A stretch of DNA of 64,000 bases, taken from NCBI GenBank assembly GCA_964270895.1, contig OZ185444.1, one strand, 5' to 3'. Below the pieces are notes generated by a model that worked only from the letters and a program-made list of their open reading frames with translations, ran no database searches and was not told where the DNA came from. Origin of the DNA: Podarcis filfolensis. Lineage: Eukaryota. A program made the translations under genes and the position numbers. This document shows positions 40,101-43,100 of the stretch, piece after piece (within the stretch, counting starts at the first letter, position 1; each line of letters opens with the position of its first letter).

Positions 40101-43100
40101 CACAAATGGAAGGTCTCCTTCCATGGACCAAGATCCAGCAGAGCATCCCTCTAGCAGAAAGAGGAACAGGCGGTTTGTGCTGATCACCCCCCTCCCTGCA
40201 CTCTTATTGTACCCCAGAGGTCCCCCAACCCTCTAGACCGGGGGGAAAAGGGGTGCATGGGATGGGAATTGGCAATTCTCGTTTTCCCCATCTACTGGTG
40301 GGGGCATTATGAGTGCAACTCCCCTCAGGGGACACTTCAGCCAACATGAGCAAACTCAGGGTCCCATCCTAGTTTTTCAGTGTTAGAAGTAATATTATGG
40401 TCTTGGTATGCCTGAAAAATCCAAAATGACTGTGTTTAAAAATGATTTTGGAACAAAATAAATAACCTTAATATAATGTTTGCTGTCAAATACTCTTTCT
40501 TTCAGTAAAGTAAGAATTGGCATGCAGGATTGCTGCTAAGTGGAGAGCAGATGTCTGCTGCTCCAAGTTTAGAATTGATGCTCAAATTGATGCTCAAATG
40601 AGTGCTGCTAAGCACCTAACAAGATGCATTCTCCATCTCAGTAAATAAGGCAGTGGAGAAACTGTAGTTGAATGTTGGTTCAGAAATGGGGATACTAGTA
40701 GGTAACTGTTTGGTGGGCAGCATTCACCTAGACCTGCATTGTTCTATTTTTCCGGAATTAGCTGAACTCATTTGAACAACTGTGCATTAACTACACGAAT
40801 GAGAAACTGCAACAGCTCTTCAACCACACCATGTTCATCCTGGAGCAAGAAGAATACCAGCGTGAGGGCATAGAATGGAACTTCATTGACTTTGGCCTGG
40901 ATTTGCAGCCCTGCATTGATCTTATAGAAAAACCGGTGAGTGACTCATGCATCGTGTCCTGGGTAGTACAGAACAGTTATTGCAGTGAGCTTAAGGCCCT
41001 TATGCACAAACCTCTTGATTTATGCTAAGAAGCTGAATTTATCTACGTAAGTGTGGTCTTATGAGCATACGAGGCCACCACCTTGCTGCAGCTGAGGTAG
41101 TTGAATATGGTTAGTCCCTAGGTATGAAACTGCCTGGGAACAGCATGTAAGCAGCCTTGGGTTCCATGGTGGAAGGCAGGCAGGTTATAAATAAAAGATA
41201 ATAAAATTAATTTGAATAAACTTGCAAAAACTCATTTAAATGTAGAATTCTTTTTATGAAAAATGGTATATAAAAGGAGCAAGAAATGGGATAGTTTTAG
41301 AGACTGCTTATGGCCAGTCTGGAAAGCTGCTTTGCTAAGAGCAATTGATAGATTTCATTTTGTGCGCTTTTCTTGTTCAAAACCATGAATCTTTATAGCA
41401 GTGCTGATTTCCACTTGATTTCTTTTTTTAACACAGGCTGGACCTCCTGGCATCTTGGCCCTACTGGATGAAGAATGCTGGTTCCCAAAAGCTACTGATA
41501 AAAGCTTTGTGGAAAAGGTGGTGCAGGAGCAAGGGACTCATCCCAAATTTCAGAAGCCAAAGCAGCTAAAAGACAAAGCTGATTTCTGCATTATGCACTA
41601 TGCTGGCAAGGTAAGCCCTTGTGTTTGTAGTAGAAAGCAAAGCAAAGAGGTGCTACTGAATTGTGGACAATTTAGTTCCTGCTGATTTGAGGGTTTGTTT
41701 TAGGCTAGTGAAAGCTATGTACTGATCAAGTTCCACATTAGGAAAGGAAGCAGTGTGCTCCCATAATGGTCTACGGCTTTCCATTTAATGGCAAGGCACA
41801 TGAACTGTTGCTGATCCAGCCTTTCCGTTCTTCTCACAGTGGCAGCTTTAGCACTTGTTGACTAGCACTTCTGAGGTGCTCTGGATAATTCACATTGGTG
41901 GTATCCAACTAAGTCATAGCTGGAATAGACCCACTGAGTAACTTAAATTTGTCATGTCTTGAAGCCCATTGACTTATGTGATCTACTCTGAGTTAAATCA
42001 TACAAATAAGCTAAAATTAAGCTTCACCACTTAGTACAGTATCTCTAGAATCATGTTCCATTTCAAGAGTGGGGCAATCATAGTTTTGCCTCTTTTTCCT
42101 CAATACTGAGGCAAGGTTAATCTTTTGTAGCTAATATTAATGAATTAATTTCTTCTCTAGGTTGACTACAAAGCTGATGAGTGGCTGATGAAGAACATGG
42201 ATCCCCTTAATGACAACATTGCTACTCTGCTACACCAGTCCTCTGATAAATTTGTTTCTGAACTGTGGAAAGATGGTATGTAACCAGATTTCTTGCATAT
42301 TTTTCTTAGAGTGCTTATCCAATATCTTGAAGCACTTTATATATAGGGACTTTCTACTCCCTTAAAATGTCAGTGATCAGTGTGATCCAAAACTTGTGTA
42401 TGCTTTATTCTGAATACTATCCTCCTCCTGTTGCTGAACTGAGGAGAGATTGGAAAAGGGTCAAACTGTCAGGGGCAGGCAGCATTCCAGAATAACATTC
42501 AAACCGATGTTCCTTGTACTCTACCGCATCCAAATATGGGATGTAATGAGATGAAACCAAACATTGCCTCTAAGGATTTCTTTGCTTATTCCAGTGCCAT
42601 TAGGTATCTTGCACTCTGGATTATCTGCTTTGACTCTCACTGTTACTATCTCTTTTCTTGGGTTTTTCTTTGACGTCTCTGTTGCAGAGATGCAGAACGT
42701 TCAGAGAGCCTATTTCTATCAACACTTTCCTATTCTTCATCTAGAACCAGGTGACTGAGAAACCCCGGGTGTCGTGTCGTGTGTGATTCCTTCTAGAGCC
42801 ATGCAAGAAATGCTTCCAATAAATCTTATCTGCCCCTTTGCCATTCCTGCTTGTCTGTCTCATTCAGTCCCTCTGCTTTTTTGCTAGTAGACCCTCTTGG
42901 GCTTGGAAAAATAACTGATCTTGTTAACAAGGTGTGATCACACAGGCACAGCAACACAAAATACATGGATGGTACTGCTTTAGTGATTCATACAAATAAC
43001 TATCTAAAATTACTGTATAAATTATTTTATTGCTAGTGGTGCCATATGGAGTGATGACCATATGTGGCTCTAACCTGAATATTTTTGTGTATGAGGAGCA

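Follow-up and report, generated by a model that had tools for sequence, protein, structure and literature searches.

A probable squamate orthologue of the MYH9 loop-2 cassette exon A2 in the lizard Podarcis filfolensis

Our analysis of a lizard MYH9 gene identified a 63-nt exon that is very probably the squamate orthologue of A2, the alternatively spliced cassette exon of loop 2 in non-muscle myosin IIA (NM IIA), with its splicing and function in the lizard inferred from mammals. The window, that is, the whole stretch of DNA analysed, comprises 64,000 nucleotides of contig OZ185444.1 of the Podarcis filfolensis assembly GCA_964270895.1, and all positions are counted from its first letter. The exon itself is already known: a 63-nt exon A2 in loop 2 of MYH9 was described from mouse and human by Das et al. 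(J Biol Chem 2023; PMC10480317), and Mallick et al. (J Biol Chem 2026; PMC13158602) place it between exons 15 and 16. What is added here is the squamate copy, a bird gene model and the stasis of the exon at the DNA level in sauropsids. The lizard exon can therefore be regarded as real but ordinary, save for its complete sequence identity with the bird exon, given that the exon, its product and its regulation have already been published for mouse and human.

Exon structure and host gene

The exon lies in the loop-2 intron, between an exon ending in ELWKD and an exon starting with VDRI. The features that define it are as follows.

42161-42275, plus strand: constitutive MYH9 exon 5' of A2, encoding VDYKADEW...SELWKD and the first base (G) of a split codon
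42686-42687, plus strand: acceptor AG (tctctgttgcAG), preceded by a pyrimidine-rich tract at about 42650-42685
42688-42750, plus strand: A2 cassette exon, 63 nt, phase 1 at both ends, open, flanked by AG and GT
42751-42756, plus strand: GTGACT, the predicted weak 5' splice site (+3 G, +5 C), unchanged across the bird contigs
44552-44745, plus strand: constitutive MYH9 exon 3' of A2, encoding (V)...IPNHEKK, the remainder of loop 2; mouse exon 16

The upstream exon corresponds to mouse exon 15 in the numbering of PMC13158602 and ends at 42275 (CTG TGG AAA GAT G|gtatgt), and the downstream exon starts at 44552 behind the acceptor ctctag|TT, followed by GAT CGC. Both junction codons are split after their first base. 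Without A2 they join as G|TT, coding for Val; with A2 the reading is G|AG (Glu), twenty codons and then G|TT (Val), with zero stops, and the product gains 21 residues between D614 and V615 (human numbering) in loop 2. This junction reading was limited to the two split codons (66 nt), each exon being searched separately and not as part of a joined protein. The stop-to-stop frame at 42555-42755 is longer than the exon, so the limits of the exon are set by its splice sites and not by stops. The original prediction had described a phased 63-nt exon with splice signals that was not delimited by the open reading frame track, and both parts of this description were borne out. Open frame and matching phase are by themselves weak evidence for an exon, as 105 AG..GT segments between 15 and 300 nt in the 2.3-kb intron are open and phase-compatible, and four of these have a length of 63 nt; it is homology that raises A2 above chance.

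To assign the host gene, the exon translations were compared one by one with proteins of solved structure. Over residues 577-614 of human Myosin-9, the upstream exon (42161-42274) was identical (38/38), compared with 35/38 for Myosin-10, and the downstream exon (44554-44745) matched residues 616-679 of human Myosin-9 at 62/64 positions, with 126.8 bits versus 107.5 for Myosin-10. A tail exon (63631-63840) likewise scored 83 bits with Myosin-9 and 63-66 bits with Myosin-10 and Myosin-11. Judged by these three exons, each with Myosin-9 as its top solved-structure match, the host gene is MYH9 and not MYH10, MYH11 or MYH14, in agreement with the original prediction. Neither an A2 nor a B2 insert was present among the searched sequences of solved structures.

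Several MYH9 introns of the window also carry an interspersed repeat (221-610, 15526-16030, about 54790-55170, and also 14677-15089), the copies of which translate alike and have a SINE-like look; Rfam gave no hit for them at gathering thresholds. Microsatellites of the compound type (AG)n/(TG)n occur in introns at 1266-1386 and 34650-34790.

Similarity to mammalian A2

The lizard peptide is identical to mouse A2 (EMQSTQRAYFYRRFPILHLES, printed in PMC10480317) at 16/21 positions, compared with a chance maximum of 7/21 among the approximately 128,000 six-frame 21-mers of the window, the query for this chance comparison being the 21-residue mouse peptide as printed in that paper. The likeness to mouse and human A2 extends to the same gene, the same intron after ELWKD, the length of 63 nt, the phase and the first codon: mammalian A2 begins at the second nucleotide of a GAG codon (PMC10480317), as does the lizard exon. 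The acceptor context of mouse A2 (tgcag|AG) and its GTGACT donor are both shared with the lizard, and no UGCAUG occurs near either exon. The five residues that differ from mouse A2 are NV (ST in mouse), QH (RR in mouse) and the last residue, P (S in mouse). The lizard insert lacks the Arg-Arg pair of the mouse, and the five differences shift its net charge by about -2.

In mouse brain, inclusion of A2 reaches about 15% relative to the unspliced form, versus 5% in muscle, and the protein was detected in brain (PMC10480317), in agreement with the original prediction, which had mentioned a homologous MYH9 insert reported from mammalian brain. The accompanying remark that this insert is poorly characterised is outdated, as its ATPase, motility, co-filaments, tissue distribution and splicing mechanism have since been published (PMC10480317, PMC13158602). 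NM IIA2, the isoform with the insert, has a very low actin-activated ATPase and no motility, retains actin binding, co-assembles with NM IIA0 and slows it, and its expression follows circadian rhythm variation (PMC10480317). The mouse and human donor GTGACT has a MaxEnt score of 6.60, and its weakness causes skipping; after mutation to GTGAGT or GTAAGT the score rises to 10.67 or 10.86, respectively, and inclusion increases (PMC13158602). RbFox1-3 promote inclusion of A2; as UGCAUG is absent nearby, the authors put forward GUGACU as the proposed contact of RbFox3 (PMC13158602).

One alternative is that A2 is used in squamates under a regime unlike that of mammals, with broad or high inclusion or in another tissue, and with a protein effect that may differ in the absence of the RR pair. 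The five residue differences from mouse, with the resulting shift in net charge of about -2, would be consistent with this reading, as would the role of loop-2 charge in tuning actin activation, on which PMC10480317 cites earlier work, and the stasis of the insert in sauropsids (21/21 residues between lizard and bird) as opposed to its change within mammals. The sauropsid insert has about two fewer positive charges (QH versus RR), and its biochemical effect could differ from that of the mouse insert. However, the lizard has the same weak donor (GTGACT) and the same acceptor context that underlie the low inclusion in mouse, and the B2 insert of MYH10, which is still more negative, also inactivates the motor, so that factors other than charge probably contribute to the effect. 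We therefore consider a different squamate regime improbable and favor the reading of the exon as an orthologue of A2 with mammalian-type use.

Conservation between lizard and birds

A word search of the protein collection with the frame 42555-42755 as query returned three proteins. One of them (P0003), annotated as 'Myosin-9, partial [Cathartes aura]' (GCA_000699945.1, contig JMFT01216627.1), joins SELWKD directly to A2 and is identical to the lizard insert in 21/21 residues and in 63/63 nt of exon DNA; this bird sequence is a 60-residue partial model that ends at the end of A2, and is a computational annotation and not a sequenced mRNA. The other two, P0001 and P0002, represent frames that read through on contigs of genomic DNA (two JGI metagenome samples, one Logan run). 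The contigs examined were those of Cathartes aura (L001), three of bird type (L002-L004) and one of the bonefish Albula glossodonta (L005). L002-L004 were taken as bird DNA because their flanking intron is 94-98% identical to that of the Cathartes contig, and none of the contigs was taken as human. The window falls well outside this bird group, with 13% exon divergence, whereas the bird contigs differ from one another by a few per cent.

The annotation of Cathartes aura (L001 2409-3077 and 4901-7903) splits MYH9 into partial proteins exactly at A2, with one model of 60 residues ending with A2 and another of 204 residues beginning at the next exon. L002 (JGI 3300005287) and L003 (JGI 3300000035) are bird-like MYH9 contigs of 6.6-18 kb, identical to each other where compared, and are host DNA within metagenome assemblies.

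Three conserved segments stand out around the exon.

42605-42687, plus strand: conserved 3' part of the upstream intron; contains the acceptor ttgcAG, a pyrimidine-rich tract and, possibly, a branch site (ttGAc)
42678-42762, plus strand: run of 85 nt in which three of the bird-type contigs are identical to the window, covering the exon and both splice sites
42757-42904, plus strand: conserved block of the downstream intron, containing a UG-rich tract at 42770-42785

The exon is identical to L001-L003 at 63/63 nt, and its comparison with Cathartes aura (L001) gave changes at 0/63 bases and 0/20 third positions. The seven neighbouring constitutive exons, by contrast, differ from the same contig at 131/1010 nt (13.0%), including 118 of 334 third positions (35%), with amino-acid changes in only 2 codons. 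For these figures only the per-exon rows and the totals of L001 were used, since a false placement of the exon at 48042 enters the totals of L002 and L003. At the rates of its neighbours, the invariance of A2 would have a chance of about 1.6e-4 by a simple binomial, a value computed after the exon had been chosen. The remaining bird-type contig (L004) has one change in the region, from N to K. The exon was thus confirmed as intact, as originally predicted, and appears strongly constrained in sauropsids.

Conservation reaches into both introns. The upstream segment 42605-42687 has about 70% identity to the bird contigs (69/98 columns), with its last 10 nt identical, and positions 42751-42904 have about 79% identity (124/156 columns). 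The intron is thereby alignable to birds for about 80 nt on the 5' side of A2 and 150 nt on its 3' side (block 42605-42904), whereas at other exons the alignable DNA ends about 5-15 nt from the boundary. The stasis of sauropsid A2, at 63/63 nt between lizard and bird, far exceeds that of the published set, for which PMC13158602 describes A2 conservation in ten species and quotes a cross-species identity of 79.6%; alligator and chicken appear there in the B2 panel. A further, more weakly alignable stretch, at 44418-44551 (the last ~130 nt before the next constitutive exon), has about 65-70% identity to the bird contigs, with the core ACATCTGT...TGAAGCAAA...CTCCT, and may be part of A2 splicing control.

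A second alternative is that the block owes its conservation mainly to a non-coding role, for example in splicing or transcriptional control, with the exon not, or no longer, spliced into lizard MYH9 mRNA and its open frame a passenger. Conservation at the nucleotide level with zero synonymous change, reaching into both introns, does exceed the needs of a protein-coding sequence. Yet regulated cassette exons usually show just such a reduction of synonymous change together with conserved flanks. Searches around A2 also gave no support for RNA structure: the alignment fold had a positive (unfavourable) covariation term with only 2 compensatory pairs, and the single-sequence fold had a z-score of -0.61. 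Moreover, mouse and lizard agree in reading frame, exon length, phase, both splice sites and 16/21 residues, and the mammalian exon is translated (PMC10480317). A mainly non-coding role is thus very improbable, and a translated A2 cassette remains the preferred reading.

The invariance over 85 nt and at 0/20 third positions raises the possibility, doubtful as it is, that A2 is ultraconserved-like in sauropsids. Constraint at the RNA level would then be superimposed on the protein code, for example by closely packed splicing signals within the exon that are linked to the weak GUGACU donor, and the peptide, with N4 and P21 and without RR, may be near the ancestral insert, with a motor effect that could differ from that of mouse NM IIA2.

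Relation to the loop-2 cassettes of MYH10 and MYH14

A second word search, with the Cathartes aura protein (P0003) as query, returned two B2 sequences, one (P0005) with mammalian MYH10-type flanks and the insert EIQNIQRASFYDSVSGLHEPP, and the other (P0004) a bird 'Myosin-10, partial' with the insert EIQNIQRACFYDNITGLHDPP. Lizard A2 matches the P0005 insert at 11/21 residues (counted by eye), the same value that the original prediction had given, and mouse A2 matches B2 at 9/21 (our own count). N4 and P21 are common to sauropsid A2 and B2, the corresponding residues of mouse A2 being S and S.

The MYH10 cassette (NM IIB2) resembles lizard A2 in its 21 residues (63 nt), its homologous loop-2 site and its phase, and it resembles mammalian A2 in giving a product without actin-activated ATPase or motility, according to Kim et al. 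2008 as cited in PMC10480317. It differs in belonging to a paralogous gene, in a second half (DSVSGLHEPP) unlike that of lizard A2, and in a donor reported as strong (8.77) in contrast to the weak A2 donor (PMC13158602 supplement). The MYH14 cassette (NM IIC2) is also a neuronal loop-2 cassette at the same site; however, it is 99 nt (33 residues) long, has little sequence similarity to A2, and has an opposite kind of effect, namely activity independent of light-chain phosphorylation (PMC10480317).

By their common site, 63-nt length, phase and 11/21 residues, A2 and B2 are paralogous. The shared position, size and phase and the E-QN-QRA-FY...LH pattern argue for a loop-2 cassette that predates the split of MYH9 and MYH10, and an origin before this duplication would be the simplest reading of the similarity between A2 and B2. 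A model from Albula glossodonta (P0006, on L005, JAFBMS010000106.1, ~11945-12142) has a B2-like loop-2 insert (EIETFQRACFYETVS) in a host gene that is MYH10-like by its neighbouring exons, which implies that B2-type cassettes are at least as old as bony fishes. The deposited bonefish model seems to run past the expected exon end and then stops.

The match of 11/21 residues might also suggest that the lizard gene was misassigned and the exon is the well-known MYH10 B2 itself, but this idea is practically excluded by the flanking exons (38/38 and 62/64 to Myosin-9, clearly lower to Myosin-10), by the tail exon, which is best with Myosin-9, and by the closer identity of the insert to A2 (16/21) than to B2 (11/21); the Myosin-9 matches of the three exons refute membership in B2, and the relation is one of paralogy.

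Putative splicing control and function

Motif searches of the bird contigs and of window positions 42488-42950 gave no GCATG, which agrees with the report from mouse. The UGC at -5 to -3 of the acceptor is kept in all five sequences, and a UG-rich tract, tgtcgtgtcgtgtgtg, located at 42770-42785 (20-35 nt 3' of the A2 donor), is conserved in all bird contigs, with UGUGU/GUGUG kept in all five sequences. The UG tract resembles the sites of UG-binding splicing factors, although this tract, the UGC and the YGCY and YCAY motifs are only consensus-type matches. A search of Rfam at gathering thresholds gave no match across the whole window.

The acceptor context and donor shared with mammalian A2 would be consistent with a mechanism in which the weak donor leads to skipping of A2 in most cells, which would make NM IIA of the ordinary form. 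RbFox-type factors would aid the recognition of the donor by U1 in some neurons and, as regards mRNA, in muscle, and this rescue would result in the inclusion of A2 in a minority of transcripts; we infer tissue-specific inclusion in the lizard by this analogy with mammals. The 21-residue insertion into loop 2, which binds actin, would be expected to block actin-activated phosphate release, giving an NM IIA2 heavy chain that binds actin and co-assembles with NM IIA, yet moves no filaments. Such a heavy chain may play the role of a tether or brake within mixed filaments.

Lizard A2 is in these respects largely confirmatory, as the literature on mammals already covers the exon, the inactive motor that it yields and the control of its splicing. 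Its weak GTGACT donor and acceptor context are invariant in amniotes, in keeping with the published mechanism. The DNA of A2 has been frozen between lizard and birds, yet five residues have changed towards mouse, and the differences QH versus RR and NV versus ST would provide natural variants for probing which residues of the insert stop actin activation.
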